From Ophelia neglecta (taxonomy: Eukaryota): DNA of 64,000 nt. Of the stretch, positions 1,681 through 57,390 are shown one piece after another. The notes under the pieces are model-generated. The model was not told the DNA's origin. It ran no database searches and worked only from the letters and a program-made list of their open reading frames with translations. The stretch spans positions 24,056,001 through 24,120,000 of the forward strand of contig OZ260663.1 in NCBI GenBank assembly GCA_965285935.1. Reading direction: 5' to 3'. The position numbers were made by a program, and so were the translations under genes. Within the stretch, counting starts at the first letter, position 1. Each line of letters opens with the position of its first letter.

Positions 1681-3574
1681 TTATCAGTCTGGTTTCTGAT
1701 ACAGAACATGACCTCCATGCCCTGGTAAGAACGGGTGACAAAGTGTCCCCTGTTCACCGTGGGAGGTCTGGGGGTTTGTCTAGTTTAGGTTTAGATGCCA
1801 GGTCCTGTTTTTCAATTTTTTTTGATTAATAAAATCTTAAGTGGAATCTACAATTGTGCAAGTAAGAATATAAAAAAAAACACTCAGAAATGTGATAACA
1901 ATCAAGTTTGGCATGCCATATGCTTTAGCGGCTTTCCATGAGATCCCCCCGGCGGGGGGGGGGGGGTAGATGGGGGGGGGGGTTAGGGGGGCACTCCCGT
2001 ATATGGTGGGTCTACGAAGGTTCCTTGGGAAGCCCCCCTCCCTCTTCATATCTCTAAATTAATATCCGCTACATTTGGTAATACTTTGGTTATACTTTCA
2101 GCATGGACCCGCTCTCTATGTCACCACAGATGAGCCCGCTCGATATTGTGATTTTTCCAGAAAAAAAACTCTCTTGAATGAAACTCGTTGCCCCTTCCCA
2201 CCAGTTCCACAGGGTAGTACTCCGTCCCCCTTCCCCGCCCGGATTCAGCTCCATATGCAACCTAGAGCTCATGGTCCTATACTATAGCTCCTTACATGAC
2301 TATCTCAAACTCATGTTACCTTATAAAGCGCGTCCTTAAATTAGCCCTCCATTTTTTCATTGCATGAAGGGACGTAGCACACCCAGGTCAATATTTTACG
2401 CGCTAGCGTTTAAACGAAAAAGGGCTTGCAAGTGTACAGATGACACGACACTAAAACACAAAAAAGCTCAGAGATAACCCCTCGACTCGCTAATTGACAG
2501 TTCTCAGCTCCTCTCTGATGTTGTGGGAAAACCCTGACTATCAGTGCGGTGTGGCTAGTACTGTGAATAACGACTTCTCCCTTTCACTCAACAAGTGGGA
2601 CAGTGCTCGCTCTTTGGCCAGGGAGCTGTCGACTCCATATCTGATAGGAATTGTTGGTTCATTCTGACATCGAAGCCTTGTTCGTCTGTGTATAAAACCT
2701 GCAAATGAATGCAAATCATGCAAGGCCACAAATATTTGCTTTTTTCGAGAGAAATTAACAAGATGCCCCGGCAAAATGCTAACAAGGAACCCTGATAAGT
2801 TATCCTGGACTTTTTACCAATATGTAACACGGGGCAAAGTACCGAACTCTCCCTATCAATTGTTTTGTTTTATTTCTATAAATAAAGTATCTTATAAATA
2901 TAATGATGGAGCAAAAAGATCTATCGTACGTATAAAACCCACTGAGGTACGACACACCAGTGATGGTCTTTTAGATGAAAACATGGGGCAGATAAATTTA
3001 ACGATTGCATCAAATTGGGGTTGTGTGATTATGAAGAAAGCATTGCACTGCTACCTGCTTTAAGTCAGAACTTGTTCTCCCACTGTTCCACTTCAGTAAG
3101 AGGTTGGAAATATATCTCTCTCGCGCACTTGAGGTGATTATGATCAGATATTCATACATCAGTTCTTCTCATAACAACCACAAACTCCCGTTCACTTAAC
3201 AAGATTAAAGAAAATTCGCCAGGCTCTTGTAAAACTTACTTTTATCAAACCCATTTCGAGTTGTGCCTTATCACTAAATACATTGGCGTCAAACAGTTCA
3301 GCCTGTTTTTTTCCGGATTAGCTAACGGCCTACGAGACAACGATTATACAATATCCATAGGGTTAGTATTCGTTGAACGAAAAGCAAACTATGCCTAGAA
3401 ATTGAACTGATAAAACACTGTCCAAAGTCTGACTTTTAACATTAAAGAACGGAAGAACAACAATAAGAATATTCCTAATAGCATCGAGGGCCTTGCACCC
3501 TCGCCAACATCCAAGAAACGAGGAAACTATCAATTACAGAGTAGGCTATATCAATTTCGAGAACAGACTGCAAG

Positions 3575-3772
3575 ATATCAGCATCTGTTTGTTCTACTGA
3601 ATCTGAAGTGAAGCATGAAAGACAATAAACGATATCCTTCACAGCTAGAAATCATGTTTCAACGTGGCGCTGTGTCAAACCACGTGTTTCCAACAGATCA
3701 AAGCCTGGTGAGTTGCAACGATTTGAGACATGTATATCTATAGCAATGAATCCTTCTTAAATTGGAACTTCC
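3575..3772 (+). promoter_or_regulatory. Module D (other copies 16225-16440, 35434-35510; weak 47005-47050)
   Basis: Shared core TATCA...TGTTTGTTCTAC...GA.GTGAA...TGAAAG..AATAAAC. Confidence 0.62.
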
Positions 3773-4960
3773 TGCTGCAACGTACACCCAGGAGTTTCCA
3801 GCTATATTTAATTCATACGGTCACTTTTGAAGGGACTGGATAATCAAAAGACAAAAATAAGACTCAGTCAAATGCATCAAGTCTACCCATTTTCAACTAC
3901 AACGGTTTTGGTGAACTGTTCTTCCAATCCTAAGAACTCAGGGCACGTCGCTGCTTACAAACTCATTATATAATCATGTGTAGCAGGGTATGAGGTAGGT
4001 CCAAATCACAAATAAGGCTTGCCTGCGTCCAAGTGTTAGCACCATGTTACATTAATGCGCAGTCCAGCTTCGTGTTTCCTTATTGTACTGCAAATAGCGC
4101 TGACATCTTTATTTGAAGAATAAAAACTTGTGTAGAATACTTCTTGAGTAGTTATCAAAAGTAAGTCATAATAAAACATCCATATTCAACCTACCTTTGG
4201 TTTACCACTGATTCGTTTGCTTCATAAAATAATTCATCATTCATACTCACAAAATTCGACTCATTTCTGACGTTTAACCGCAAAATCCTTAAAGAAACTT
4301 TAGTTGTGAAACTATAAACATATCGCCAAGTCAGTAAATAAGGTCAGATGCTTGGTTTTGGGCCTCTGGTCAGGTTAAAAACCCACTTCTACGGCGGTGA
4401 TCCCAGGACCAGACGCTACCCATTACACTGCCTAGGAAATATGTTTGCTCCGAAATCCCTTCTTGGGTGTGTATTGTCAGGGATGGGTTTGCTTTGCCAC
4501 ATGTGTTAATGTACAGACAGACGTCGGCAGAAATTGACTGTGGTTAACCAGTCTGAGAATCGTTTTAGGAAAATGAATTACAAAACTCGCTTTTCTAGAG
4601 GCAGAATTTTACCTCTGAAATTGGATTAATAATAAACAAAAGACATTCAACACCCGAAACAAATACAAGGGTATATATATTTTAACGAACATTTTTACAT
4701 TCACTTGCTTGCAAATTAAGGCCTAGTTTATAGTATAAAAACCTCAAAGTGAAGTTTGCTTCATTTGGAAAATCTTCAGTTGGTATAGGCCCAGCTGCCT
4801 AGAAGAACATGACCGACACCTAAGACATCAATGAGGTTTTGTGTGTTCAATTCTATCTCATTTTCTCTATTTATCACTAAGTTACTATAACTAGTTCAGC
4901 TATATATTTTCTCTTTCCTTCATTGACTGACGGCCTAATCAAACAGGCGTCTTAAACACA

Positions 4961-5150
4961 CCCCGCGGGAACATCAAGGGTAACTAGCGAAGGATTCTGA
5001 AGAAGCCGCAGGAATTTCTTATCAGCAATAATAATATTCTAACTGAAATGCCTCATTAAGTCTCAATCCAAACAGATGCCCCTGGATGAGCCTCCGGGTA
5101 ATACAGCCCTCTTTGATGTCTCTCGACAGATAAGGTCACAGTGGATCTAG
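4961..5150 (+). promoter_or_regulatory. Paralogous conserved non-coding module A, copy 1
   Basis: 54 bp (5005-5058) identical to 37469-37522; further homologs at 38267 and 48259. Confidence 0.7.
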
Positions 5151-6057
5151 ATTTATTACAGAACAAAGTCATATCTAGGTTAATTATATTCCGAAACTAG
5201 CAATTAATTTATTTTCCTATTCAAGCAGCGAGTTAATTGTTCAGCCTTGCTTTCCATGATCATTCCTATTGTTTATTTAACTCCATGTGCTGAGCACATC
5301 TCCCCATAACAGTTTGAATCAACAGTAGCTGGTGGGTAGCGAGTATATGGTTAACGCTTATAGGAAACGTTTGACTTGTTCTAGGTTTTAAAAATGTGTC
5401 TTGTGCAAATATTCGCCCCACCGAAGCACATTTTCCCCCCAAGAAGCTTAAGGACCTGTAATCTATAACATCCTTTTATAATTGATGCTGCTATGTTTAA
5501 ATGTCGTTTATAATTATTGTAATATAACTTGTATGAATTGTTTCAATGAAAATATCCAAAACAAGCTGAACATTATTTCCTAGAAGATTCAGTTATTAAA
5601 AGTTATAGAGAGCTAGCCATCGATTCTTCAGTGAAGCCAAACAAAGTCTAAAAATGTCCGACCTGCTTCCATTATACAACTCTATTAATCCATATAGTTT
5701 TCTTTGCATTGATTTGTGCGGAACTAATACAATTCCGTTTGGTCATCAATGTATGCTTCACCAATAAACGGAACAGCCATAAGCTGTTTGTAATCCTTTC
5801 CTTTTTTTATATGTGATGGGAACGCATGCACCCCCCCCCCCACACTAAAAAAAGGGGCATCATATTCCCCCCCCCCCACACTTTTTAATGATGCCCCTCT
5901 TACTTTTTGCTCTCTCAAAATGGTGCAATGCAGGAGTGGTCAAGCGCCTTTCCTCAGTTGGCTTGACCATAATCATATAGTTACCTGTGGGCAGGTTATG
6001 TACAAGCCCATTACACACCCAATAATTGAATGTTTTTGCCATGTACAAATCAATGTA

Positions 6058-6179
6058 CAGTGGCGGGGGTGGGGGTGGGGTGTTGCCTGCCATCATATGT
6101 TTTGCCCCCCCCCCCTCACTTTTTATGCCGCCAATGCAAAGTTGGCCCCCTCACTTTGATTTTCCTTCCTACGCCTCTG
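6058..6179. mobile_element. Short hAT-like MITE remnant
   Basis: Ends CAGTGGCG...CGCCTCTG with G-rich/C-rich subterminal tracts; no target duplication seen. Confidence 0.4.
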
Positions 6180-6767
6180 TTCCACATGCCTTCAATTTTG
6201 ACTACTGAATTAGGCAATACAAGTCCCGTTCTAGAGCCAGTAATCTTATCTTTTTTTCAATATTTACAATCCAACACTCTCTGAATACAAACAACAATTA
6301 TAATCCCTCATAAACACCAGTTGTAACAGCATCAAATCACCCTGCGGGGAATATTTATTTGAGAACCCATGATAGTTTACGCTTTCTTCAAACATTTATT
6401 TTGAAGGTGTTCTTGATGTTAGAGGGCGCCACCTTCTAGTGAGAAGTCAGTAGGATTCACTGCTTGTTTAATGTCTTGCCCTGGTTGGCCACTAAGAGAG
6501 TCTTGTCTTTCTCCTTGTGAGTTCAAAGCCAACAGAAAATGAACCAGTTGTGAAACGTTAATACCACTTTAAATAGAAGCTTGATAACCGAATTTTGTGA
6601 AAAGCGGAAGCGTGGAGCCTTGCGATGGTAAATCCTGAAATTAGAACTGAGCACTAGACCTATTAAACATGTCCCTAACCCGTTCAATAGCCCTAAAATT
6701 AACATTCAACCCTAACCCTTGCCTTGCTGACGATTGTTTCCTTCGTGCCACTCAGAAACATCCATGA

Positions 6768-6957
6768 CCTCCGCCTAACCTCCGCCTGGCCTCCGCCTGG
6801 CCTCCGCATAGCCTCCGCCTGGCCTCCGCATAGCCTCCGCATAGCCTCCGCATAGCCTCCGCATAGCCTCCCGCCTGGCCTCCGCCTGGCCTCCGCCTGG
6901 CCTCCGCCTGGCCTCCGCATAGCCTCCGCATAGCCTCCGCATAGCCTCCGCATAGCC
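6768..6957. repeat. 11-bp minisatellite (CCTCCGCATAG / CCTCCGCCTGG), about 17 copies
   Basis: Directly visible two-variant tandem array; it explains ORF 6699-6953. Confidence 0.95.
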
Positions 6958-9900
6958 TTGTTTAATCAGTAGCCTGATGACCTTGTGATAGCTGACCTTA
7001 CTGAAAAAGGCCCACTTCTTTTATAATATTTTGATTTAGCGAATGATTCTTTAATTATGATGACGTCAGGTCATAATACGACATGAAAAAGGACACTTAT
7101 TACACAGCTACTAAATTATCGCACGATCCTGGATTAGATTAGCTTTCGTTGGGAAGATTAAACTTGACAATGGTTCCCCTCAGTATCCAGCGGTGATCTG
7201 ACTTCTCTTGGGTATAAAGCTCTGTCTGTTCATCGTATTATTATTTTTGTTTATTTATCGTTGCTGATGTTTTCCTGGCTTTGTTACACCATGCCAGCTA
7301 CGATATAAATTACTATAATGTGAAACTTCAGTGTATCAGTGTTCTTAAAGTTTAGTTGTTTTGCTTATACAGTGTTACATGTTTTATATTTTAAACTCTA
7401 TTTACTAAAGATAACGCTTTTACACAAATGTCCTGTGATTTGCTTTACTTGTTGTAGATCTAAAAGGGTGGCCACACGACAGAAATCCTTGATGGATCTT
7501 AATGTGATCTTCCTGACCTTTATATAGTTAATATGATTTCATAAATGTAATTATTATTCTATTTAATGTATTATTTATACTGATTGTTAATTTCCGGCAA
7601 CTGCATATAGTAAAACATTAAGCCTGATAAAGTTTGCTAGGTTTCATGGCGGCACACAGCTTATAGGCGAAACTATAGCTTCAATTGGCAGTTTAAGAGC
7701 CTGTCTAGCTGGTGCAGCCCACTTTCACTGAAGTGATTTATCAGGTGAAAAGAACTTACAAACATATAACTCTGATCCCATTGAAGCTGACCCTCCTTTC
7801 CATAGGGAGAATGATTCAGTGTATATGTCTTGACCTTCTCTAATGTGATACAGTGAAAGCAGTGAAGAGGGCAGCACCACCAAGATTAGTTCTATGCTGA
7901 GGGTAAACGTTCTTTTGAACTCCCTCATTAGCATGTGCTTAGTTCGTCTGTCTCAAATATTAACTACTTTGAGATTAGTTATTGGCGGGTGTTATCTTTC
8001 AACTTAACTCGAAAACGAAACATCAGAAGGCTGTATAAAAGGTTGATAACCTATTTGACATTCTAATTGACACCATTCAACTGCCTCCATTCTGGAATCA
8101 AAACGATGACTCCCTCTGACTCCTTGTATATACGTACCAGATGAAAACATCGTCATTGCCAGGTCCACGCATTTTTCAACACCCCATTAGGCGTGAACAG
8201 TTGCCGCCTAACTCCCAATGGTCAATTATATAACATAATAGCTGAAGTATGAATACATGGATACTAGATAATCTGTTAAAAGCTGCAGGTTTTTTGCAAT
8301 CATATCTATTTTGCAGTATAAATCGGGAAAGTACATCTATATTGCGTATACTTTGAACAAACAGACAACTCTATAATGGATAAGCAAACCGTGTTGTCAG
8401 GTCCCTAATATTACGTGACAGCTTAGAACAGGTAGAGGAATTCGTGCTCAATTGTATACCCGAAGTTTTGAGTTGTGGCTAATGCTATTCTTACCCAGTT
8501 ATGATTTTTTTTTTGCGAATATGGCAATAATAGTGGTACTTCTTATAGTATTGTATATAATCAATATTACCTGTATAAGCCAATCGCCAGCGCGGAATGA
8601 TCTAAAACATAATGGAGAGGTGGTAATCACAGCACCCCCCCCCCCCCAGCCTCCCTTAAGTTTTGCACTTACTGATTTACACGTTATGTTGTTTCACCTA
8701 CTGTCACCATGCTTACTTTAAAAACCTCATCACATTTGTATTTTGATGTTTTGATACATGCCTTGTTTTTAGGGGTCAGATGAAATAAACTGTTAACTAT
8801 ACCAATATCTCTTATATGTTAACTAAACTGATATCTCATACTTCTGGCTAAACTACAGATCGAGTTTAAAACGGACTGTTCGCACCGATTTCAGGCACGT
8901 TTATATATTAAAGATTTCGTTTTGTTCTCCGAGTATTCTCTCTCGTTTTTTCCAATGAGAGCCGGCGATATTCCAACAACCGTAAAGCTGGCCGAGTCCA
9001 CAGTGATCATCTTCGACATCAGCCAAAACCTACCAACCATTCTGTCGTCGTCGTTCTAAGATAACATCCAGATTTCAATGTATAAAAGTCCAGACAGGCC
9101 TGTTGGTTTCTGCCTGACATTTGATCCTAAATAGCTACTTTGAAACTGTTGGTCCACATTTAAACATGGCTTCGAATCGAGAGATTGGAAAGAAAGTCAA
9201 ATCGTGGGAGCTATTCATATTCGTGGCCTAGTTTGCCTAAGGCTAAATATTCCTTTTTACTGGTAGATGTGTGCTTCAAAAACCTCCGACAGAAGCTTTG
9301 AAACTTATTGGACAAGGTAAATAGTTTCTTCAACCAATGATTATGACAATGCTAAATCGTGTATTGTACGCTACTCGTAAATGAACAACCCTGTAACATT
9401 AACCGACTTTTTGTGATTCTCCGTGTCCAAATAGCAATGTGGTGTACGTGTATAATTTCTCAAAATTACTAGCGCTTTACGACTCTACAAGTCCTGGGCA
9501 ATGATATTGGACTGGTAGAAAGCGTGGTACCATATCTATTAAAGCCTGAGGGTGGTTCAGTTAATTTAAGCGATGCTCTTGCATTACTGGAAAACAATAT
9601 CTGGGTAACAGATAGAGTTATCTCTGAAACAAACTATAAGCAGGTTCTACTTACATGATACAGATCCATCGTAACTCATCGGAATATGAAAGTGGGCAAT
9701 CTAGGAGCAATGACTTTAAATTTCAGAGGCAATCGATTGGTTTGATTTGAGTTTCAAATTCTTTTCCTGATTCAAAAGCTTTTTTATTTTGAAGCACAAA
9801 GGCGCGGTTTATAAGTAGTCCATTCAAGGTTGCGTGCGTCTGCTAAATTCAAGGTCCATTGTTGGCATATCAAGATGCCCTCCACCCCGCCCCTCCCAGG

Positions 9901-10814
9901 AAATCAAATACTAGACCCTACAATCAACAGTCACTTTGCAAGGCCATTAAGTGTAAGTCAGAGAACAGTCATTCAATAGTACACAGCCAACAGCCAATGC
10001 CACTAAGCTCAAGAAACTCGCCAACATCTCGACTCTGTAATTGGCAGTTATAACAATTATAATTTTGTATTCAAAAAAAGTTTAGGTTCATAAGTGGCGG
10101 CGAATTAGAATCTTTTGAAGGAGCCCAAGCACCTGACAGTCAATGTATTTTGCCGTTGCACAGATCTGAAAATGATTCAGTTGCAATGAAATCGTGGGCT
10201 CCCGAAAAAGCTTCTGGCGGTGTCTGATCAGAACAATATTTAATGTGTCAAGTAGTCGGTTGTCAAAGAGTCGAAAAGTAGATAATGACGAGAATTATTC
10301 TCTCAGTGGACGCCGGAAGCCCCATTAATATGGGATTTCTGGTCGCATTTATCATTTAGTTATTCTATTCAATCAGTATTGTTCACTTTCACGATCATAT
10401 TTTTTTGGTGGAGTGCTGTGTTCCCGGCCACCGACACTGTTGACGGTAGTAGTCCCTCTACATGTGTTTTAGATTGAACCAGTCCCTGGCTTGGTCCGCA
10501 TGGCATCCATTCCCTATCTCTGAGTTTGTGGTGTTACTGAAAACACTTCCAGAGGGATCTACTGGAGTGCGAAGTAGTGAGGGTTTACACCTTAACATCA
10601 TTATTGCTGATAAAACAGTCCTGAAATATTATGTCGTATTAATCGCATAATTTGTAACCTCTATGGGATAACCACTGCACCCGCTGATTGGAGTTTATTT
10701 CAAGGAATTTCAACAAACCCAAGGAACCACAACAGCTCTTATTGAGGTTAATATCATGAAAACAAGACTGTTCGCACTTTCACGGCTGTTCAAGGCTGTT
10801 CCACTTAACCCCCG

Positions 10815-10890
10815 GCCTCTGACACTGAATGTCACCTACCGCGAAGGCGACGATTGGTAAATAGCTCCACGATTTATAACCTGCCATTTT
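10815..10890 (+). promoter_or_regulatory. Module I (second copy 27077-27150)
   Basis: GCGACGA...AAAT.G...CA.GATTTATAACCTGCC; roughly 70% identity over about 70 bp. Confidence 0.55.
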
Positions 10891-11649
10891 CAGCTAAAGC
10901 CCATGTTAACAAGGAGCCGGTAAAAAGAGACATCTGTGACAAATCTGCTCATAATACTGTTTGACGTAGATAGGCCATAACAAGCACAATAGTCAAATCG
11001 TACACATACAAGTGCCAATCAAACAGCTACTATATAGCAAGTGATTAGCAAGTCGCAAACATTTATTCCACGCTGTCATGGGAAAGCCTCTTAATTTTTG
11101 GCATTTTGAGAAATATATACATGATTTGTTGCTAAGAATAAAGAAAACTATGTTTGTCATTTAAAAAACAAATAAAATTTAGAAGCTCTATAGATTTTTA
11201 TGATTTATCAACTCAATTAATGTTGAAATGATGAAAGAAATAGTTATTTTGATTACCACAACGAACTCTGATTTCTGATTTGCATGTTTTTCTTGTTGAA
11301 CGTAGTCAAAGTTTGGTTTCGCAGACAACATGGCATATAATTTTATAAGCAGCGCTCCATTTATACGTCAGTAGTTAAATTTTGACAAACGTTAGCACGA
11401 CATGCAGTTTTTTACACACATTATCCTCAAAAGAAAACTCTTAATAGCTTGTGAAAGAGAAACGCAATTCCCTTTAATCCGACTTTTTTGGCACCCCGAT
11501 AATTTATGTTTCATTTGATTAAACAGACATTTGGTTCAACAATTTATATTGATGGGTACGATATCGGACCTTCTTGCCTAGATGGGCTCTTAGAGATGCA
11601 GTGTTTGAATGTATAACGCATCATATCTTTATCGCGGATGTGTATAATG

Positions 11650-11830
11650 TCCGTCGCCTGTCAAGTATGATAAAGTGGGTCGGGTCAGAGGTCAGCTCAT
11701 TATCCAGTAAATAGATCTAGTTATTGTGGAGAATAGAAGCACCATAGTTGGCATAAATGATAACCTTGTCAACCGTATGCCTGATCCTTAACTAGGCGTG
11801 ACTCGCCCGAGATAAGTAGGTCTGAAATTT
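11650..11830 (+). promoter_or_regulatory. Module F (second copy 21885-22070; weak 27970-28035)
   Basis: About 115 bp at roughly 85% identity: GGTCAGCTCATTATC.AGTAA.TAGATCTAG...GATAACCTTG.CAACC.TATG.CTGATCCTTAACTAGGCGTGAC. Confidence 0.62.
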
Positions 11831-12453
11831 CATATATGTGACCTAAAATGAATACCGGTTTCTGTTCTCAGTAGCATGTGTTTTATGCTTCTCAGGCATA
11901 TTCAGTTCCACAGTCCTTCGTCCCACGTATCAGAAATAACCTCAGATATCAAACTAAACAGTTATATTATCTAACTGTACATGTATAATACATGATCTGG
12001 ACACAGCACAGAAATATAAAAGTAGGTGGCTGCATGCCGATGAGGAGTTCGGCTGTTGCGAATTTCACGTCATTGGGCCGTAGAGGTCGTAAATATCTCG
12101 GTGTCATAAAAACTGGGTGATTGGAAGCGACTGGGTGTTCTTTTTCTCGTCCGTTACTGAAGAATAAGTCGGATTGTTACGTGACGTGGATAACTCTGCT
12201 GCCTTTACTTGTCTACAAACGGAATTAGAAATATGTCTTAAACAATAACAAAACAACTTGGAAGTTTAGGGGCTTGTCAACCAATCATTGTAGCTAGTAT
12301 GTTTCCCGTGTTTAAAAACTTATACATCAACAGTTAGCTTAATTCATCCCCGATATCCAATTATTACCTTTAATGGATTTTCTATTTATATTCCGAATCA
12401 CCAATCTAATAAGGATTAATCTTAATACGCTTTTAGAAGGGTAGTCTTAAGAA

Positions 12454-12575
12454 AGTGATGAATTCAAAGTGACAGCAACCTGCAAATAATCTGATAGCGA
12501 CATTCCTGACCGATGACAATGGCTTTCTGCGAACCATCAATGTCTATTGGTTTGGAGTGGATAGTATCAGGCAGG
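12454..12575 (+). promoter_or_regulatory. Module E (other copies 28465-28545, 31801-31918)
   Basis: AGTGATGAATTCAAAGTGACAG.AA.CTGCAAATAATCTGA shared with 31801; GTGACAGCAA...ACATTCCTGACCGATGA shared with 28475. Confidence 0.6.
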
Positions 12576-12803
12576 CTGGTACTCTTGACATTTCGGTCTA
12601 GATCTGTTTAGTGCCTGGTCGTGGCCGGATAATGGTATGATCATGCTACGCTCCAGGAGTGAGTAGAAAAAAATAATTTTCATTATTACCTCCTTGGTGC
12701 TTTATTCTTAAAAATCTTATCATTGTTCTTTCCGCTAAGCGCGCGCAATCAAATGCCTATAAACGATGGGTTTTAGTCCTTGAAAACCTATTTGATAGTA
12801 ATA

Positions 12804-12981
12804 CAGTGAAACCTGTGAATTAAAGCCACCCAAGGGACCGGAAAATGCTGGTCTGATTTTGGAGGTGGTCTGTTTAGACAGGTTATTTAACATTGAAAGT
12901 ATATAGCATGGTCATCATGTTAGTGGTCTGAATTGGCAGGTGGTCTGATTATAAGGGTTGTCTTTAAGGCAGGTTCCACTG
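12804..12981. mobile_element. Tc1/mariner-pogo type MITE
   Basis: TA|CAGTGAAACCTG ... CAGGTTCCACTG terminal inverted repeats and repeated internal GGTGGTCTG motifs. Confidence 0.7.
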
Positions 12982-13188
12982 AACTTTCAAACAAAGAGGC
13001 ACTAGTCTGCTAATATTCACCGTTTCATGCCAACAGGAGCAAAAATAATTGCACCATAGTTTCTTTGCAAGTCACATGCTTAAGCTAGGATTTTCCTTGC
13101 TCAATCATAGAAAGGCAAAATATTGTCAATTGAATTACACTAGTAACGTATTTATGTGAGTAGGTTACCTATTTTATAGAGTTGAAAT

Positions 13189-14006: not shown

Positions 14007-14009
14007 TCC

Positions 14010-37400: not shown

Positions 37401-37424
37401 TATGGTACTCTGATCGCAGTAATA

Positions 37425-43850: not shown

Positions 43851-43907
43851 AGCTACTGTCTGAGATAGGAGAACTCTTCCCATACGGATGGCCAACAGAC
43901 TCCCGCT

Positions 43908-45588: not shown

Positions 45589-47469
45589 GCGGCCAACGCT
45601 TTGTCTCGCGCAGCCTCAACCCTGCCTTTTGTGGCAAAACAAAATACATGATAGATGAGGATACATGAGCGAGCTCTAACATTTCTGGTCATTCACTCTA
45701 AAGATGGTTTCTTACCAGTTACATACCAGATGGTTGTTTTCGCCCAATATGTTTCAAGTCAGTTTCAGCAGGTCATGGTTCTGAGATCAATTTGATCCAG
45801 AAACTCCTCGGATCGCATGTCTGGTGCCACGGAGCGAGAGGGGCTGCTTCGGTGAGTTTGTTCAGCTGTCGCCTGGAATGTTCTGGACAGAATGTCAATA
45901 ATATATGTTGTGATTAAACGCTGCACGGCAGCAGTGTGGAGGATGTCGCTTTTAGCTTTTTAACAAACAAACAAAATGGCTCTCAAAGGAGAGACACCCA
46001 GAAGAGGGGGCTCTTAGACTCCCAGAGTTGGGGGTTCCGTGACTCAAGTGTGGAGAGGCACCGAGTTGAGGGGTTGACTCCAAGATGAGCGGGGGGGGGG
46101 GGCTCTCAATGTTAGAGGGCCTCTAACAGAATGGACTTCGGATTTCGGAAGGCTCAAAGTTAGTCCGTGAAAAAGGACTCCGTGAAAAACAGGGGCTCCG
46201 AGGGATGGGACCCGGGAGGACTCGGGAATACTCAAAGAAATTACGTCAATCGACAAGTAACTAACACATTGATTCTATATCGGCTGCGAACGCTTCTAAA
46301 AGGACGTTCGACCCATTGGCCACAGGCTCTTGGACGATCTACAGATATTCGATGAATAGCACCTGCGCTTGTTGGTTTTAATAGCCGCTTACTAACTTGG
46401 GGAGGACCTGTTGACGTCTGCTACTTCAATATTTACAATCAAAGCGTGTAAGAACACAAACAACAATCATTACACCCCGTTAACTCATTGTAACAGAATC
46501 ATAATCGCCGAGATAGAACTATTTATGTGATCACCACTGATAGTTTACTTACACTTCAAATATTTATTCTTCTAGGTACTGCTCTGCATACAGATGGCGC
46601 CACCAGCCTGTGAGCGATGTAAACTTTCATTGCTCGCTGGCCACAGAAACAGAGAGAGTGGGCAACCGGAACAACCTTAAAACAGATAACTCAATGCCTT
46701 TTATTCGGATTTGGATTCGCAAATACCTTGTCTGGTATTTCTTATTTCGAAGTGCCGCATTTTCTATATTTCTTAATACGCATCATCGCAAATTCATCGA
46801 GTACAAGTCCTATCTCTGTAAAACAATACAGCGTCCTGAAAGTCTTTACACAACTTTGATTATTTGAGTGTCAGTGCCCGTGACGGTTGGAAAGCACAAA
46901 CTATGAGAATGCAGGTTTAAAACCATCATTTGAAGTTGCCTGCCCCCCCCCCCCCCTTCACATAAACCTGAAAATATAGCTTATTATATGGAAAGCCCCT
47001 ACACTACACATTGTAGAGTTTGAAGCATGTGAACATAATGATTGATATCTAACCATCCTCATTTAATTAAAAAGCTGATCTGACCATGTCAGCGCTGTGG
47101 CACTACTTTTTGAGAACGAATTTGCAAATACAAACATATTTATACTGTGAAAATATTATACTTTAAGAATAAAGTTGTGGTTTGTACTCCCCTGGAAAGA
47201 ACCTTTAATAAAATGACATGAACGCAGGCACGAATGAAATTTATATGTCCGCAAAGTCATCATCTCTAAGCCAGGTTACAAGAAACCTGCAAATGCGGAC
47301 GTTTAATTACTAACCATTGACCAAGCTAGTTCTTTTTTAGTTTATTTATCTTCAAAGTATTTTTGGTATCCTCGTCAGCCCACCAAACACGTGAAACCGC
47401 CATGGTCTTTCAACTTACTCTTTGATCTATAATGTATTTGAGCAGAATGGGGTTTGAAGGCAAGTTGAT

Positions 47470-47555
47470 GAGACGACCCCTGGGAGGTCTGTCGTCTGTC
47501 GAGATGACCCCGGGCAGGTCTGTCGTCTGTCGAGATGACCCCGGGGAGGTCTGTA
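47470..47555. repeat. Approx. 31-bp tandem repeat (GAGATGACCCCGGG.AGGTCTGTCGTCTGTC), about 2.7 copies
   Basis: Directly visible. Confidence 0.8.
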
Positions 47556-47907
47556 GTATGTCCATAGCTTATAGGTATACCGCCAAACCCCGTCTGGAGT
47601 TTGTATTGTCATGGGAGGCTTTACAGTGGCAGATGTGTTAATGTACAGACCTACGATTGTGTCAGTCGACTGTGACTAAACTTGTTGAGAAATTTGTTGC
47701 AGATATACAAATCAGAACTGTTCAATTAGCTCAAATGGAAGACAGGTCGTCTTCACTGGTGAGCATATTGCAATTGATGAATCAGACCTGAGACTTAGAT
47801 ATATACTGTTAACGACAAAAAAGCTTACAATCATTTTATACAGTTCGCTGATTTAAAAACAATATGATTAACAATCAGCTAGCTAAAAAAGCAAGAAGGT
47901 AAAATGA

Positions 47908-48258: not shown

Positions 48259-48402
48259 CCCCCGCGGACATTTTGAAAGGAAGCAAGCAGAGGAATTTCT
48301 TATCGCCAATAACAATATTCTAGCTGAAATGGCTCATTAAATCTCAATCTAAACAGTTGCCCCTTGATGAGCCACTGGGAGATAGGGCTGTCTTTGATGT
48401 CC
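48259..48402 (+). promoter_or_regulatory. Module A, copy 4
   Basis: GGAATTTCTTATCGCCAATAACAATATTCTAGCTGAAATGGCTCATTAAATCTCAATCTAAACAGTTGCCCC...CTTTGATGTC. Confidence 0.65.
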
Positions 48403-51400
48403 GAGATGTCTCATCTGGATTAACAGCGGCCAGTCCCATAGCTCGACTGGTCTGTGAGCAATGATATCTCTATCTTAATTATTGTAAAGATGACATTAAG
48501 CATACCATTTGGAATTTTGATATATTTCGTATTAAAGGATTAGTTTTGATAATATCGTTATATCAAAGAAGCATCTTTAAACAGTTTCAGTAATAAGTTA
48601 TTTATTAGCCAGCCATTCTTACTCACGAATCGAATGATTTTGAAGTAAAAATGTATTTCACCCTAACACTTATTCACCTGTGATGACCGTTCTTGACAGC
48701 TGAAATTACATTGCAATAAACTGTAGCTATGCTAGAAGGTTCTCGCCTGGTACACAGGTAAAGACGCTGTACGTTGTATCGGGTCTTAGATGTTTAGCAG
48801 GCATACTACATGGGTTGTCTTATTTATCCGCGCGTTTGCACGTCGTAAATCTCACAGCAATTTGTCTAATCCTGGTCTGGTAGGCGCCCGCCGAGGTCAG
48901 AGAGGTGTACCCTGAGGGGGTACAGCTGGCCGCGGCCGACTCACATTGCAGTTGATATGGATTGTCTAGCCCTATAACCATGAAACATTGGAATTTAATA
49001 CTGATAACTATAGCATTTCAGAAAGATAAATTATCTTGTGACACTTCCATGCGACATGTTATCACAGTTCTAACCAAGTTGTGTTTACGATACATGTGAT
49101 TTGGAAATTTCCTTCGTAACGTTACATGTTTAAGGCAAGCTTCCATTTAGAGCTCTTCATTTAAAAGTCCTGAAATTGAGCACCGTTGATCAGGATATTT
49201 TACACAGATTGGACAATTCGTAGAGTCAATCACAAGGTATTTTGTCACCAGGATCGCTTTCGCTCTTCTAGACCTTGTCTCGTTAAGAAGTTCCACGAGA
49301 TAGGTCCGCGTAGTCCAACGAAAGATCGGCCTGAAGGCTAGAGCACTTCATTACAACGTGGGCGGACATTTTTCCTATAACTGAAGGAACACCTAATTAT
49401 TTCTTCTCTCTTTTTTCATAATTTTTTTATAAAATTTATGTATACCTGCTCACTGCCCTGTCACCTAATAAAGTCACGCTCCGTCTAGATTCATGAGAAA
49501 AGTATCTTGATTAGCCAAGATACGCCCCATAATCATAATACAATTGTTTAAGACTCGCCGGCTACGAACCATTATTTGCGTACAATTTTCCGTTTCATTT
49601 TAATTAGGTTTTTTTGATTAATTAATCGTTATTGTTACTTATTTATTCTTTACACATTTCTCGCGTATTTTAATGGCGTATCCTGTTGATAACCACAGTG
49701 TGTGTTGTTGAATTCCTGCTGAGAACAGCTTGGCCATGCAGATAACCAAGTTTGACATGCGTCCATTCAGAATACCCGATAGGGCCTCTCTGTCCTTGTA
49801 ATAATTATATCCACAGAATGTATGGGCTACAATATAAACCGCAACATACCAGAATATGGCCCATAAACGGACAGCTACCTATTCCATCAATGCAGTGTAA
49901 ACAGTAACAGAGATGGAGTTCGAGTTGAGATATTCATTTTTTTTTTATATTTAACCAAAGTAGATGTGTACAAATGCAGACAATAGCGCCGAAACAGACA
50001 TATTCTCTTACTGTGTAAAGGACAAAAAAAAATATAACTCGACAATAGTAGTAATAGTAATCCAAGCAAAAGCAAAAAGTGTACCTTAATTATGATCTAA
50101 TTGCCTGCCACCAAACATCAATACGTATGTAATGAGATTGATCAAAGATAGCTTCAATCAAACAATAACATCAACAATTTTCAAACCAAACATAAACCAA
50201 TACCCATTGTAATAAACCAGTATGCTCACTGGCGACCGAAATACCCGCACCACCCCACCCCACCCCACCCCACCACGCACCACCCCCGTCGCAACACCAC
50301 TACATAGGTTTGTAGTATATGGTACCACACCGGACGCAGCGCGCGGCAGGACGGAGAAAGAGAGGAGGCAGCAGCGCACCCGGGCGCCCGCGAGCACATC
50401 TAAGCACATACACAAGGAATCTAGCATTGTTTTACATGAGCACGTAAACACAAACATTGACAAATATATATAATAGATAGAGACACGGTCATTCGTACAT
50501 AGACTCTAGGCGGCCAATAAAGAGATATGAGGGCACACCAATATTTCACATCCACACGTACAAAAGTCAGAATTGCTTTATATCGAAAATTCAGTCCCCA
50601 ATCGACCCCCCACCCCACTCACCCCCCCCTCCACCCCCCCCCCCCCTCAGGGGAAACATTGCTATCCCTCGCCGTCACTATCATAGCAGAACCCCCTTCC
50701 ACCGTAAACGAGACCATATGAATGAGACAAGGCCTTGTCGGGTCTTGTTCCCATTAGTAATGTATATTTAATACACGGAAAAGCTGGAATTTTCATTTTT
50801 AATTTGCTACAACTTAATAGATTTATCAATATTTGGGCCTAAACTATGGTATCACGTAAGTGGTATCACGTAAGTGTGCGCATGCTTGTGTACACTAATT
50901 TATCTAGATATACTTATCTTCTTTATAAATTAACTTTAATTAAGAGTTTCTCTGTATACAAGGGCGTCCAATAAAAAGAGTACCCACCAGTGTTGGCATC
51001 CGCTCAGACTAGGGTATGTTTGTTTTCGTTTTAAGTTATGCGTGTATATATTTATGTCTTGTCCGACAAAAAAGATTTATTAATTCATTCAATAGCATCA
51101 ATTTTATATTATAATTCATGTTAGTATCAATAGCTTGTTAAACATGAAACTTTCTCCTTATTGAACAAATTGTATCCACATTCAAGTACAATTTATCCAT
51201 ATATTATATATAAGGCACCCTTCTTCACAGGATGAAGAACTCGAGAGACGAATTTCGGGGACAACCTCAGAATGTCATTAACCGTTCCCACATTGCGGTA
51301 ATCCTGCCAATGGATAATGTATTTTATTGCCGTTAAGCGGCGCCACAGGATAGTATGGTAGATTATGGTTGAACTCCGAGACCGTTTTGTTGCTGAAATG

Positions 51401-51804
51401 GAAAGATACCTTACAATTAATTGCATGTTGTCTTTTAAAGGTACGAACAACACGCAGCAGCTGCTCAATTTATTAATCCTTCCATTTTTAGTCATCTGTG
51501 CCATTTCATTGCCTAATAAATTAGTTATATTGTAACTGTTACAGAGAAATAATAATAAAATAAATTTTCAAACACACTAAATTGATTCCATAAAAACATG
51601 TCTGCCTGTGTGATTTTCATTTTGATGGTAAATTAGAGTATAAATAATTTATAACATTTGAAGATAAGGAAATGTTTTTTTGTTGTAATTGAAGACAATA
51701 GCTCGAACACATATACATATAATATATATATATTAGTCCTCCAAATTTCGAATACTGTAGCCGTGGATTTCGGGTACCGTTGGGGACGCAATGGGGTAAG
51801 ATCC

Positions 51805-51926
51805 CGAGCTGTCCGACGAGCTGTCCGACGAGCTGTCCGACGAGCTGTCCGACGAGCTGTCCGACGAGCTGTCCGACGAGATGTCCGACGAGATGTCCGA
51901 CGAGATGTCCGACGAGATGTCCGACG
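51805..51926. repeat. 12-bp minisatellite (CGAGCTGTCCGA / CGAGATGTCCGA), about 10 copies
   Basis: Perfect tandem units in two homogeneous variant blocks, inside pseudogene exon 1. Confidence 0.95.
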
Positions 51927-51960
51927 TTTTATTAGGGTATTGCGGTTCCCAGTCTCTGGA

Positions 51961-53885
51961 GGTTGCAGGGAACTAAATAAATCTCCTATCTCTTACATGT
52001 TAAATCGAGGCTTTTCGTCGTCATTTTTCGTATTTTCACAACAATAATCTGCATATAGCGACTAGTTCTGCCTAGAGGCCTATGTATTAGGGGAAAAATA
52101 TCAAAAATTCAGCATAGCAAATGTACAAAAAATTTTTGCTAGAGGCTCGAGAAGAAAAAGTGGCCATTTTACTTGTTTTTGTCACATTTGGCTGCCATAC
52201 CGCACAAATGAACCCAAAAATATCCACATGGGTCTTTCTGAATCCCACAATTCCAAAACAATACCATCCCCGGTCAAAAATTATTTACTATTCATAAGCA
52301 TACTATCTAAATTTTACTATTAACACATAAACCAGGCAACCCGGGTATGTTTTCTGCCTTTTTTGGCCAATCACAGGCCAGCTTGGCCAACTTTATTATT
52401 GCCCTGAGAGCTCTGGAACACCTACCAGGGGGCAGCACTGCATGGAAAAACTGCTATTTAGTTCACTGCAACCTATAAGGGGAAATTTTTTTTCCGGGCT
52501 TTCTAAAAAATTGCGTTAAATGGTAGCTAATGATCATTGCAAATCTATTTCCAATGTTTTTTGGGCAAAAAAATGGGTTTTTCTGCCTCGCCTGGCCATT
52601 TGAAAATGACATGTCTACTCGGTACGGGCCCAAATAAACCCCCTGATGACGCCTCATAGGAAAATGTAAAAATGTTGAATATCTATCGTCATTATTATGA
52701 ACCTAAAGTTGTATGTCCACTTCTCATACACAACTGCTCATGCAAATGGACCCCCCTCGTACCCGATACACGAGTATATACATCATGCTACTGCCATCAC
52801 GACGGTTGCCATGGAAACCAAATTTCAGCCTAGACTGGTTACTGGTTGTTACTTTTGTCATGGGCAGGCGTGAATTAGCCCAGTGAATACCCAAATGTAT
52901 AAGAAAGTAGTCAGAGGTCAAAGTTGATATCATCCCTGAATAGTTGCAACAGTCATTGTGCACTAGCTACATAGTTGCCATGGTTACAAAGGACAGTAAC
53001 AGCCCATAGAGCGGCGTGTTGAATAATAATAAAATGTTCTTACTTGGTGGGCAAGGCTAATTGGCATGCATCTACACCTCCAAACAAAGTGAATTACCAC
53101 ATACGATTTGCCTCAAATTCGGAGGACAGTTCCTGAAAATATGGCCAGCTCTACCCATCACCACCGACCCCTCACCCCCTCCCCCTTCCCATCACTGCCG
53201 GCCATACTTTTCGTCCACTATACATCAATTTAAGTGGCCTTTGGCCCTTGTTATCCCCTAGAGTCTTATTATAAGTATACAGAAGCACATTTTCACCAAA
53301 AATAACTAAGTAGCAGGGATAAATTACACAAATTTAGGTGAAATTGTCCGATTTTAGCTAATTCTGCCTATAGGTTGCAGGGAACTAAATAAATCTCCTA
53401 TCTCTTACATGTTAAATCGAGGCTTTTCGTCGTCATTTTTCGTATTTTCACAACAATAATCTGCATATAGCGACTAGTTCTGCCTAGAGGCCTATGTATT
53501 AGGGGAAAAATATCAAAAATTCAGCATAGCAAATGTACAAAAATTTTTTGCTAGAGGCTCGAGAAGAAAAAGTGGCCATTTTACTTGTTTTTGTCACATT
53601 TGGCTGCCATACCGCACAAATGAACCCAAAAATATCCACATGGGTCTTTCTGAATCCCACAATTCCAAAACAATACCATCCCCGGTCAAAAATTATTTAC
53701 TATTCATAAGCATACTATCTAAATTTTACTATTAACACATAAACCAGGCAACCCGGGTATGTTTTCTGCCTTTTTTGGCCAATCACAGGCCAGCTTGGCC
53801 AACTTTATTATTGCCCTGAGAGCTCTGGAACACCTACCAGGGGGCAGCACTGCATGGAAAAACTGCTATTTAGTTCACTGCAACC
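51961..53885. mobile_element. Non-autonomous DNA transposon with 513-bp long terminal direct repeats (KolobokP-like)
   Basis: Direct repeats at 51961-52473 and 53373-53885 are nearly identical (one difference noticed). Each begins GGTTGCAGGGAACTAAATA and ends TATTTAGTTCACTGCAACC (19-bp inverted repeat, 1 mismatch). TGGA is duplicated at 51957-51960 and 53886-53889. Both inner junctions are TATA, and the 899-bp interior has no transposase ORF. Removing the element restores the FoxF-homologous frame (HSRDW). Confidence 0.9.
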
Positions 53886-56800
53886 TGGAGTGGCTCAGGT
53901 AAACACATGGTCCCTCATACATAGGGTTTGAAGTGTGTTGATTTGGAATATATCGGTCGTGATGTCCAAGGATTTGGTTTGCCATGTACTGAGACTGGCT
54001 CGGTGGTTTAGGATATTGTCCGGGGACAGTTCCGGCGCTGCGGGCTGTCGCTCCGCTAGTCATGGGCGACAAAGGGACGCCTGAACCCCAAAAGGACAAG
54101 AGTGGCGCCTTCTGACGACCTTGTGACAAATCATAATAACCTCTAAACATGGCTGATGAGGAAGCCATACTACTGGCCACACCGTAATGTCATAGAGACC
54201 GCCACTGTCGGCGGGACCCTCGGGGCCGGCGTCGTAAAGATCCCTCCTTAAACATTACCTCAGCGGAGGGATCGCTCGTCCAGTAATGTCCCTTTCCAGG
54301 GCGTTAAGAGTAGATCGTTTGATGGGTGAAGCCTGTATCGCCATGACTATAGCAGGAAGCCTGTATCGTCATGACTATCACACGGGGAAGTGTCTCCAAC
54401 GCTCGAGTCGCGGTCGCCGTCCAATATTCCTTTAGTACCGGCTGTCTGTTCTTCTCACACATAATTGAGACCATCTTCCACAGATTTTTCCGATTTGACC
54501 TGTGGCGTTGGGCTATAATTCTGATTTCCGCCCGTGAATAGGTTAGCAGTAAGTGCTGAGGGGATTTCGCCGTTCATCAAACACGATTGCGCTGTCTAGT
54601 ATTTATACTTTTTATGTGCGCAAAAGTGTATACTTCCAAATAAAGTAAGCAGCGTGCCAAAAGGCCATAAAAATTTTACTAGTTGGGATTAAACAGCTAG
54701 CCTATTGTCAAAAAACGATGCTTCAGTCAGGTGAGCACGAGCGTATAGAGGCGGATAGTTCCAATCAGCACGAGAAGGCGGAGCTAGCAAGTAGCTTATG
54801 GCCAATGAAATGTGTTTACGAGCGGTCAGAATTGTAACTTAGGTGTTCTACACGCACCGGGTGATCCTTCGATCTGTCTACGATATATAGGCAGGTCCCG
54901 AGGTAACATTAATATGTACATATATGCTGCTACATTCATGGCTTCACAGCAGAGCATAAAAAAGAACCAAAAGTCTAAGACCTATTCTATTCAAATACAT
55001 CATGATACGAACGTTTGTATTGAAAATAACAATAGCATAGAGGAAAGTGTTAGGCCCGGTAAGGAATCACGACTTACCAGATTCAATGTGCCCCTTGCTG
55101 TGTCATCCAAATTTGCTCAGCAGGAGTTATTTTAATAATATAAAACCTCTCATGACAAACTAAAGTATAGAAAAATATTTCACCCTAATTTTGCGTCATC
55201 AAATTAATGCAGATTGTTTTGTTCTTGTAGAGCATTTTCAGTTGCAATCAACAATAATGTTTAAGGCTTAAAAGAGTTCCTCTCCCGGTGGTCCCGGTAG
55301 CATCATCCCCGGAGGTGCCTGGTTTCTAACCCCGGGGGGTGACGTGTGCCAATGTGAAAACAGCAGACGAGATCCAGCTAACAGACGGCTAAATCCCAGT
55401 GGAGGTCATGTATCAGCAATGTGGGATGCTACTGGCGCTACCCTTAGTGCCTAGGGCGGGAAGGGGGCGGGATGGAGGGGGAGGGGGGGGGGGGTAGGGG
55501 GTGCACCGACCATGGTTTACTGTATATGGACGCCTATAGCAGGGAAAAACTAGTAGTAAGGAGTTAATCTTAAAACAACTTCACAAATGGCAGAGTCTGC
55601 TTTTACCTCCTTGCCAATGTTTGTAATCTAATTGATGTCTACGTCAGTAATTCTGGTCGCTTTATACTGTTTTATCATATTATGGATTTTCATTACATTT
55701 CTCATTTCATTCATTGATTCGCCATTTATATATATATATTTTTAATCATCTTTGCCTCGTTTGGCATCTAATTTTCCCAGCATTTGTGTAAACAAGATAT
55801 ATGCTTAAGTTAAGACACGTACCTTTATCCATTCTCTTTCGCAATATGTGTTCTTATTCTGTTGGCGCATGTAATAATTGTACTATAATCATTACCGTTG
55901 TTTTTCACGTGATACTTACGCTTTGTTAAAATTTGCTATTGTAAAAATCACTTTGTAAATAAATATGTTTAAACCAAATGGCAGAGTCTAACATATATTT
56001 TAGCTTACACACTGCGGGTTTATATTATAGAAATATGAGAGTATGTATTACAACATATATATTTTATTTATCTAACAAGGGGCCCATGTCTAGGTAAAGG
56101 TTTTCCAGTGAGGACATTATGGGAAGCGTATATATCATATCATCTGTCACAATTGGGTGCATATTTACAAAATCTTTTTGGAATTGTGCGGCTATTACTA
56201 TTGCATATACTTGACGAAAAAGCGACTCTCGAAGAGTGCCCCTAGCCAGCACTAGGGTGAAGTAAGGAGTGGGACAGGAGTGGGAGGGAGGGGGCAGAAG
56301 AAAATCCGTACGAAAATTGCTTGACCGATAAGATGGATTAACGCTTTGAACAACTCCTTTAACCAGTGGGATACTTCGTTTAATGTCTGCCAATGTTACG
56401 GCGGGCATGTGTTTGTGTTGTCGTCTTCCTCTCCCTGAGGAATGTCCATAAATCTATCGGCTAGTGTAACAGCAGACACATTTTTTAAGAAAAACAAAGA
56501 GTGATGTCTGCATTAGATTACATGCCATTAGATTCAAAGCATGCGCATGCGCATTGAATGCTCGACTAGAAGCTCGAGTGGCAAAATAAACTAGAGCTCG
56601 CATGTCTGTACAGGTCCAATGTTTCCCTTCCACTCCCACACTAACCCCAAACCCCTGTCCAGGAGTCGGTAAGTACTGTTTTGATGTGACCGTTCCATAC
56701 CCATAACCATCACAAATTCCATCACCGCCAGGGCGTCTGTACATTTCCAATGCGCTCCTCCTCATCCATAACTATCTATTGCCCGGATGTCTGAAAAGTT

Positions 56801-57390
56801 CCAATGTGCCCCTTTCACCCTCAAACATATGCCAATCTCCTGTCAGGGTAACTTCTATAGGCCTACGAATACTGTTCATATGTGCCCCTCCACATCTATA
56901 CCCATCCCAGCCCTCGCCCGGCGATCAGTGACCCCGAAACTTCAACAACCGGCTAATGGCAATGGCTCACCAACACCTGAAGTTATGTAACCAGATCTGG
57001 GGGTCTTTTACTGATGTTAAGTCAGCTTAGAATTCAGGGTTAAAATAATACGCACTGCTTAGCTGAATAAACAGTATCTTTCGTCAAGAGGATTTGTATT
57101 ACAAAGCTGTAGTATGGTGCAAAGTAATCAGCATCACTGTAAGTATGAATATAGTTCTTTCTTATTCCCGGCGGGAAGCGGCGAGAAACCTACATTTTCT
57201 CTAGAAGCTGGTGTTCCTCTGTCCCCCACCGAATGCTGTGGTTCTTGTCACGGAATGCCTGAAGTGGTTCGAAAGAGAACAGGCGAGGTATTGGTCGGGA
57301 ATATCATGCGGCGTGCAGTCATGATATATTAACAATTCGGGAATCCACCTAAAGCAGCCGATCCGACAACGAGGACATAGTTATGATTAT

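Follow-up and report, generated by a model that had tools for sequence, protein, structure and literature searches.

The FoxF locus of Ophelia neglecta is an ancient array of tandem and inverted segmental duplications, in which three apparently intact FoxF genes are accompanied by at least two dead copies of the gene, by units that hold no gene, and by 63 copies of short non-coding modules. The stretch that we analysed, referred to here as the window, comprises 64,000 nucleotides (C5:24056001-24120000 of the 762-Mb genome; GenBank assembly GCA_965285935.1, contig OZ260663.1), has about 39.5% G+C and no N, and forms the right arm of the array. FoxF is a conserved regulator of visceral and lateral mesoderm. 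A preliminary description, made from the letters of the window, had listed recurrent modules around one FoxF gene and read them as enhancers left over from old duplications. The modules are non-coding, collinear between units, conserved above the level of synonymous sites and, for nine families, restricted to this locus. They are probably paralogous cis-regulatory modules of the FoxF array that have been kept by purifying selection on clustered binding sites; this regulatory function, and the gene that each module would serve, we infer from their sequence.

The window was compared with itself by BLASTN at word size 7, and the comparison was then widened by 110 kb on the left and 40 kb on the right (negative coordinates lie to the left of the window start). 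The array spans about 129 kb (C5:23.987-24.116 Mb), with its outermost modules at -69.5 kb and +59.5 kb. Four forkhead-bearing copies of the gene and one vestige were found in it, together with a recurrent module order (P=5e-5), two arms of opposite polarity and a repeat at the junction between them. On the plus strand of the window the unit reads (E-J-D)-C-A-B-[exon 2, exon 1, 5' block]-G-H-N. The genes of this right arm are on the minus strand, and modules G, H and N consequently sit 5' of each gene. In the left arm the series is reverse-complemented and runs, in this order, A-B-C-N-FoxF-a, H-FoxF-b, and D-B-C-N with a vestige. With the I/B family left aside, 25 modules of the window are on the plus strand and 3 on the minus strand, against 2 and 14 in the left arm. 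The region from 10 to 32 kb of the window is a mosaic of both polarities, in which the groups A(-) I F E, G(-) F and I E E follow the left arm, and the groups J B D C B and B D(-) C B N follow the right.

The arms are joined by an inverted duplication of about 0.95 kb, whose right half (247-1163) matches a partner at -2033 to -1100 (82% over 970 bp) and which carries a 42-bp tandem repeat at 807-1121, detected with Tandem Repeats Finder (TRF). An orphan promoter-proximal H-G pair (-3825 to -3472) faces this junction repeat, as if a FoxF copy had formerly been present there. The old multi-copy FoxF unit proposed in the preliminary description thus stands, although the inverted arms and the mosaic mean that the array is neither purely tandem nor single-stranded. 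An assembly artefact or a set of uncollapsed haplotypes was ruled out, as the copies are 15-30% apart in the modules and saturated elsewhere.

The only intact forkhead domain in the window lies in an open reading frame (ORF) at 41189-42265 on the minus strand (PF00250, E=1.9e-34). Exon 1 of this gene, FoxF-c, occupies 41254-42265 (minus strand; 337 codons and one base, with the forkhead domain at amino acids 86-171) and ends at a canonical donor, CAAG|GTATGT, at 41254/41253. Exon 2 (40854-40978, minus strand) lies inside a conserved block, X22 (40834-41016), and was located through the conserved open frame of that block; it has a polypyrimidine-CAG acceptor at 40978, an in-frame junction and a stop at 40854. 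The same frame is open in the pseudogene copy of the block, and a related peptide is encoded 3' of FoxF-a and FoxF-b. Neither tblastn with the C-termini of homologues, which gave noise only, nor a search for the motifs YYEKC and CDRKPY, whose single match at 651-665 is a chance one, had found this exon. The array copies do not have the C-terminal 'CDRKPYF...YYEKC' motif that ends the FoxF proteins of molluscs, brachiopods, annelids and nemerteans; their exon 2 peptide is divergent, about 30-40 residues long, and starts near 'EFNQKP / EFEHAP / VFETKP'.

A genome-wide forkhead scan gave two further plus-strand matches directly to the left of the window. These are FoxF-a (-34915 to -33869, an exon 1 ORF of 351 codons, with exon 2 at -33457 to -33350) and FoxF-b (-14190 to -13105, an exon 1 ORF of 362 codons, with exon 2 at -12747 to -12658). 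Both are on the strand opposite to FoxF-c, 14-35 kb left of the window, and so the preliminary description erred in assuming one surviving FoxF. The exon 1 donor position is common to the three genes, an exon-2-like ORF follows each of them, and their proteins are 52-59% identical to one another. A block in the 5' flank or 5' untranslated region (UTR) of the genes, P5 (42396-42553 on the minus strand at FoxF-c), is present in four copies (nhmmer, E 1e-27 to 1e-42) and is common to FoxF-a, FoxF-b, FoxF-c and a vestige at -59.8 kb. As judged from their sequences, all three paralogues are intact two-exon genes under purifying selection.

When FoxF-c exon 1 alone was used as a query, the top 120 database matches were FoxF, FoxF1 or FoxF2 wherever they were named, except for one row, Forkhead box protein C2. 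The matching FoxF proteins come from molluscs, nemerteans, brachiopods, annelids, hemichordates and vertebrates, and FoxF-a and FoxF-b match the same proteins. The nearest database protein is no better than about 53% identical to FoxF-c over 72% of its length, which indicates that a close relative is absent from the database. Among 18 ORFs of at least 90 amino acids in the window, no credible Pfam domain besides the forkhead was found. A 48-bp minisatellite at 39072-39686 (12.8 copies, 94% matches), 1.2 kb 3' of FoxF-c exon 2 and between the gene and the second copy of module A, yields a spurious ORF of 160 amino acids (39314-39796).

The decay or loss of coding copies, as put forward in the preliminary description, is borne out by a pseudogene at 51.3-54.6 kb, by the vestige and by the gene-less units. 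In the pseudogene (minus strand), an exon 1 remnant at 53884-54577 was recovered by tblastn in three pieces (54577-54386, 54350-54297 and 54303-53884); about 40 residues of the forkhead are deleted, the recognition helix among them, and the frame changes at 54303. The 3' part of exon 1 (block X13, nhmmer) lies at 51710-51879 and the exon 2 remnant at 51278-51395, within a copy of block X22 (51248-51425) that is 71% identical to that of FoxF-c. An insertion of 1.9 kb (51957-53889) splits exon 1 and is flanked by 515-bp direct repeats (51960-52474 and 53372-53886 in the self-BLAST); since these repeats are 99.8% identical, this is a young insertion in an old pseudogene. The insertion adjoins a 12-bp tandem repeat (51805-51926; 10 copies, 99% matches, TRF). 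Of the fifth FoxF copy only the 5' block is left, at -59798.

To catalogue the modules, high-scoring segment pairs were clustered, nhmmer profiles were built from them iteratively, and the copies were mapped across the whole locus. This gave 60 copies in nine families (A, B/I, C, D, E, F, G, H and N) and three copies of J, that is 63 copies in ten families of modules 80-230 bp long; 36 of the 60 and the three J copies, 39 in total, are in the window. The word-7 self-comparison returned 53 non-trivial matches, nearly all of them modules of the preliminary description, whose listed positions were all recovered within a few bases by this search, by nhmmer or, for J, by Smith-Waterman alignment. 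About 11 unrelated modules had been proposed; I and B, however, are one family of about 110 bp in opposite orientations, with 16 copies in the locus. Module N is an additional family, with nine copies in the locus, and module A likewise has nine.

Coordinates in the window are given here from the profile mapping, on the plus strand unless stated otherwise, with the starts of the BLASTN matches after them. Module D (nhmmer) is found at 3534-3725 (186 bits), 16183-16374, 35392-35532 (also by BLAST) and, inverted, at 23942-24126 on the minus strand (170 bits, with minus-strand BLAST matches); BLASTN gave 3551, 16216 and 35407. The C copies (nhmmer) are at 4409-4583 (137 bits), 18367-18533, 24287-24382 (partial), 36625-36793 and 47540-47714, the last two also found by BLAST, with BLASTN starts at 4453, 18372, 36629 and 47585. 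Module A occurs at 4961-5117 (80% over 196 bp to 37424-37617, with a profile match in the locus only), at 37425-37580, at 38268-38407 (the second copy 3' of FoxF-c, A') and at 48260-48398, the last three recovered by BLAST and profile (BLASTN 4960, 37424, 38285 and 48280), and in inverted form at 10532-10625 on the minus strand (nhmmer 55 bits; genome profile E=3e-10).

The profile searches placed I/B copies in the B orientation at 19315-19420, 23765-23846, 24711-24776 (partial), 37874-37975 and 48835-48930, and another, absent from the preliminary list, is at 13672-13777; BLASTN starts for B are 19304, 24701, 37875 and 48824. The two copies in the I orientation, inverted relative to B, are on the minus strand at 10783-10885 and 27043-27148 (BLASTN 10813 and 27075). 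F is at 11626-11856 (79% over 188 bp to 21887-22073, local only) and 21865-22094, and E at 12439-12557, 28443-28564 and 31788-31891, both families being found by BLASTN (F 11648 and 21887; E 12454, 28464 and 31801) and nhmmer. The J copies at 13060-13332 and 33200-33475 align with each other by Smith-Waterman at z=22.6, and a short copy at 3261-3304, with a 42-bp core, aligns with 33400-33441 at z=8.8. G lies at 43676-43864, about 1.1 kb 5' of the P5 block of FoxF-c and about 1.4 kb 5' of its start codon, and at 55254-55449, 5' of the pseudogene (BLAST, nhmmer; BLASTN 43694 and 55276), with an inverted partial copy at 20678-20761 on the minus strand (nhmmer 58 bits). H follows at 43876-44034 and, 5' of the pseudogene, at 56949-57109, both found by BLAST and nhmmer (BLASTN 43909 and 56983). 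N is at 6231-6439 (185 bits, local only), 25303-25520, 46402-46610 (also by BLAST) and 59392-59541, all by nhmmer; the last is the rightmost module of the array.

The order of the modules was tested by shuffling the module labels over their positions 20,000 times. In the whole locus (60 copies), 26 recurrent oriented adjacencies were observed against 11.7 expected (P=5e-5) and seven recurrent oriented triples against 1.2 expected (P=3.5e-4); in the window alone there were nine adjacencies against 3.5 expected (P=9e-4). Order and strand are thus kept well beyond chance, although the preliminary description had missed the inverted copies of A (10532), D (23942) and G (20678).

Four stretches of modules were searched against the whole genome with BLAST: 35300-38500 (D, C, A, B), 43560-44100 (G, H), 10780-12580 (I, F, E) and 46380-46630 (N). 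With all first-look candidates scored, matches were found only within C5:24.017-24.113 Mb. Because weak copies are invisible to BLAST at genome scale, covariance models using sequence only were built for I/B and A. These gave 16 I/B and nine A matches, all within C5:23.992-24.105 Mb (E 1e-6 to 1e-31), and among the best 150 first-look candidates, which were scored, the next-best match to either had E above 1. The expectation that modules would match only near FoxF thus holds for A, B/I, C, D, E, F, G, H and N. It fails for M, which had been listed as a module of the array at 6593 and 43339 (the starts also given by BLASTN) and is a dispersed repeat found on several chromosomes. Its two copies, at 6568-6798 and 43314-43554 (plus strand), are each closer to copies on C9, C7, C1 and distal C5 (81-87%) than to each other (74% between the second and 6593-6776), and the first has an 11-bp satellite tail at 6768-6958 (TRF).

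The modules are embedded in DNA that has otherwise diverged to saturation. Outside the forkhead, the proportion of differing synonymous sites between paralogues (pS) is 0.58-0.82 and the synonymous divergence (dS) is above 1; four-fold sites differ at 39-50% over the whole of exon 1, and the overall ratio of non-synonymous to synonymous divergence (dN/dS) among paralogues is about 0.25. The syntenic spacers (D-C, C-A, A-B, H-N, N-C, 5' block-G and B-exon 2) score z -0.9 to 2.0 against shuffles, whereas local alignments of the modules score z 9.5-70, which confirms that the spacers cannot be aligned while the modules are kept. Neutral decay of the whole locus was ruled out, since the spacers are at chance similarity. 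Pairwise identity of module copies is 67-92%, with medians of 71-78%. Between the units of FoxF-c and of the pseudogene, identity is 70-85% for G, H, N, C, A and B, 71% for exon 2 and 68% for the post-forkhead part of exon 1. Gene-less units are alike in this respect: the A copy at 4961 is 80% identical to that at 37425, and the adjoining C-A spacers score z=0.6.

Saturated synonymous sites, together with module identity at or above coding identity, point to constraint on the modules. Saturated sites and chance-level spacers beside modules that are 70-85% identical imply that the modules evolve under constraint, more slowly than neutral DNA of the same age would, gene conversion being a caveat. 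The forkhead itself has a dS of 0.28-0.64 (41489-42053 against FoxF-a -34718 to -34260 and FoxF-b -13973 to -13439), against the saturated remainder of the same exons. This forkhead dS is lowest between FoxF-a and FoxF-c, which lie in opposite orientation and whose proteins are the least identical overall. The pattern suggests either gene conversion between inverted paralogues or strong constraint at the nucleotide level.

The modules are non-coding. In N, D, C, A, E, F, G and H, stop codons interrupt all six frames of most copies, the open frames of I/B are inconsistent among copies, and the indels of the modules are not multiples of three. No Pfam domain was found in ORFs that overlap modules, Rfam gave no match in the window at gathering thresholds, and the modules do not fold more stably than shuffled sequence (mean z -1.1 to +0.9). 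Coding exons were ruled out for the modules on their frames and stops. The preliminary description had named spliced exons as a finding that would speak against it; among the conserved blocks only X22, which is additional to the modules, turned out to be an exon, and the modules themselves have no conserved open frame.

Conserved columns cluster within the modules (autocorrelation, P<=0.005 in seven of the nine families). Invariant patches include TTATCA and CAGATG in A; CCAGCTG, TTGGCAAAT and GATTTAC in I/B; and CATGTG with an inverted CCAGAC...GTCTGG pair in C. Compared with equal-sized random pieces of the array, the modules are enriched in CAGATG (22 against 3.9 expected), CAGCTG (12 against 2.2), CANNTG (136 against 69.5), CAGAC (39 against 14.9), TTGGC (29 against 16.5) and RTAAAYA (30 against 17.5), an enrichment that is suggestive only, as the motifs were picked post hoc and homologous copies were counted as independent. 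GATA sites are not enriched in the modules. A mesodermal FoxF enhancer could plausibly receive its inputs through E-boxes, which are bound by basic helix-loop-helix proteins, through Smad-type CAGAC sites and through forkhead sites.

Under the cis-regulatory reading, an ancestral FoxF unit would have had proximal elements (the 5' block, G and H) and distal ones (N, C, A, B, D, J, E and F). This unit would have been duplicated repeatedly long ago, in tandem and with at least one inversion, in a lineage-specific manner. Three genes would have stayed under purifying selection, while deletion, frameshift and insertion would have disabled the coding sequence of others. Clusters of binding sites (E-boxes, CAGAC or Smad-like, TTGGC and forkhead-like) would be retained by selection in live and dead units alike, G and H acting as proximal elements and N, C, A, B, D and the others as distal enhancers or silencers of FoxF. 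Modules of gene-less units could persist by acting on the remaining promoters within the neighbourhood of about 129 kb, and the outcome would be a multiplied, partly redundant regulatory landscape shared among three genes. That the modules have outlived their genes, the enhancers of dead copies having been captured by the three survivors and then held under purifying selection, is a more tentative idea, which we put forward with some doubt.

Several points weigh against the cis-regulatory reading. The genome-wide restriction covers the nine families other than J; the motif enrichment is qualified in the way described above; and a search of ±10 kb around FoxF in Tubulanus and Lineus, both distant nemerteans, yielded no module. 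Gene-less units could be younger partial duplications and not units that have lost a gene. The low forkhead dS suggests that conversion takes place in the locus, and a 54-bp identical core was reported in the preliminary description, a figure that was not counted here, for the A copies at 4961 and 37425; the other copies lack it. These last two points, and a dense array that includes inverted copies, favour concerted evolution without function, in which short-tract gene conversion among about 60 copies would keep the last recombinable stretches alike. We regard this as unlikely, though deserving of attention, since most pairs are 70-78% identical, too divergent for efficient conversion; moreover, the same ten segments, not random ones, survive in every unit, module edges coincide across copies, and conservation is patchy around short motifs and not uniform over tracts.

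Transcription of the modules, as exons or UTR of FoxF isoforms, as exons of tandem long non-coding RNAs or as precursors of small RNAs, would fit the discovery that X22 is exon 2 and the position of A', B, A and C 2.5-4.3 kb 3' of FoxF-c, where they could fall in a long 3' UTR. It is made rather improbable by the lack of a conserved open frame, of an Rfam match and of excess folding stability, and by the occurrence of modules in both orientations and in gene-less stretches, with G, H and N 5' of the genes. The locus was found in three sequencing runs, all of them DNA-like and from a single study, and in no RNA run. We see only a small chance that the modules are architectural, serving as insulators, boundaries or replication- or recombination-associated sites that partition the paralogues once per unit: they do occur once or twice per unit at fixed relative positions, with I/B in both orientations and often paired with A, but ten families of differing motif content exceed what boundaries need, and the enriched motifs (E-box, CAGAC) are typical of tissue-specific enhancers. 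Least probable of all, to a degree that we consider very slight, is that the modules are fragments of transposons or locally amplified non-autonomous repeats whose order stems from a few recent segmental copies. M and the R2 repeat described below are truly dispersed, and I/B has 16 copies in both orientations; yet nine families lack any significant match beyond the 129-kb locus in the 762-Mb genome, the modules keep their order and orientation, neither terminal inverted repeats nor target-site duplications are visible in module alignments with flanks of 15-25 bp, and the spacers cannot be aligned, so that the copies are not recent.

The locus combines three divergent paralogues that are intact, two dead ones and some 60 homologous candidate cis-elements of known genealogy, and so offers a natural experiment on whether regulatory DNA is partitioned, shared or redundant after duplication, that is, on subfunctionalisation as opposed to shadow-enhancer robustness. 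It also bears on the survival of enhancers after the loss of their original gene, and the module catalogue defines short, precise targets for reporter assays and deletions. If the modules do outlive their genes, this would be a rare, directly dissectable case, in a non-model spiralian, of selection on enhancer copy number and redundancy after the death of genes, in which a family of three genes would be served by as many as 16 homologous copies of a single element. If the modules are inactive, the locus would instead illustrate clearly how short non-coding tracts can evolve in concert over long periods.

Duplicated conserved non-coding elements (dCNEs) were reportedly described beside paralogous developmental regulators of vertebrates by McEwen et al. 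in Genome Research in 2006. Like these, the FoxF modules are recognisable beside paralogous transcription factor genes in saturated surroundings and keep their order relative to the genes; the likeness rests on comparison of paralogues, while the usual definition of a conserved non-coding element includes conservation across species. Unlike dCNEs, which go back to whole-genome duplication, the FoxF paralogues come from local tandem and inverted duplication, there are up to 16 copies per family within 129 kb, and many of them are in units with a dead or absent gene. Shadow or redundant enhancers are said to have been introduced by Hong, Hendrix and Levine in 2008. The FoxF modules resemble them in that several separate, sequence-related candidate elements lie within reach of the same gene or genes, although shadow enhancers are defined by overlapping activity and usually have binding sites, not alignable sequence, in common, and what links the FoxF modules is sequence homology. 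Their multiplicity, unlike that of classical shadow enhancers, would come from duplication of the unit and loss of genes. In length (80-230 bp) and identity (70-85%) the modules are like families of short interspersed elements (SINEs) or miniature inverted-repeat transposable elements (MITEs), from which they differ by being confined to one locus, by their kept order and orientation and by the absence of terminal inverted repeats and target-site duplications. To our knowledge, FoxF is normally single-copy in invertebrates. Our literature searches found neither a FoxF array nor a map of retained non-coding modules, and no account of an array whose regulatory modules are more numerous than its genes and outlast them.

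In Owenia fusiformis, foxF is a single, intron-containing gene and no foxF array was reported, while lineage-specific tandem duplications of foxQ2 are known in Spiralia (PMC9539403). The FoxF array is like these foxQ2 arrays in being a lineage-specific local expansion of a Fox class. A second, larger Fox tandem array, with nine forkhead domains within 94 kb, is present at C12:45190613-45284194 and may be a foxQ2-type expansion of the spiralian kind. The other forkhead genes of C5 are megabases away from FoxF, and the FoxF-FoxC-FoxL1-FoxQ1 microsynteny thus seems broken.

Besides M, two dispersed repeats were found among the modules. R2 is a SINE- or MITE-like high-copy repeat of about 190 bp and not a module; its copy in the window lies at 12784-12994 (minus strand), five others in the locus are at -53230, -37725, -15097, -5166 and 67503, and 2822 candidates with 89-94% identity were found genome-wide. 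The R2 profile also matches the FoxF flank of Lineus longissimus (positions 1381-1468, E=5e-7), hinting that R2 holds a SINE core conserved across distant spiralians. The repeat at 5828-6182 has more than 3800 first-look candidates genome-wide (77-85% identity) and stands side by side with M (6593-6975), both adjoining module N. A transposon origin, ruled out for the array modules by the genome BLAST and profile searches, holds for M, R2 and this repeat. When metagenomes were scanned with a 22-bp core of module A, the 36 matches, of about 17 bits each, were confined to the seed and at the level of chance; two of the contigs concerned are labelled as gut-metagenome assemblies.

A satellite array with a period of about 467 bp (83-95% between repeats) lies at +79343 to +104000, 20 kb to the right of the last module, and contains an inverted block at 79343-80702. 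Short palindromes (28-67 bp, 87-100% self-complementary) are present at 57459-57519, 57706-57772 and 25453-25486, the first two of them just beyond module H of the pseudogene unit.

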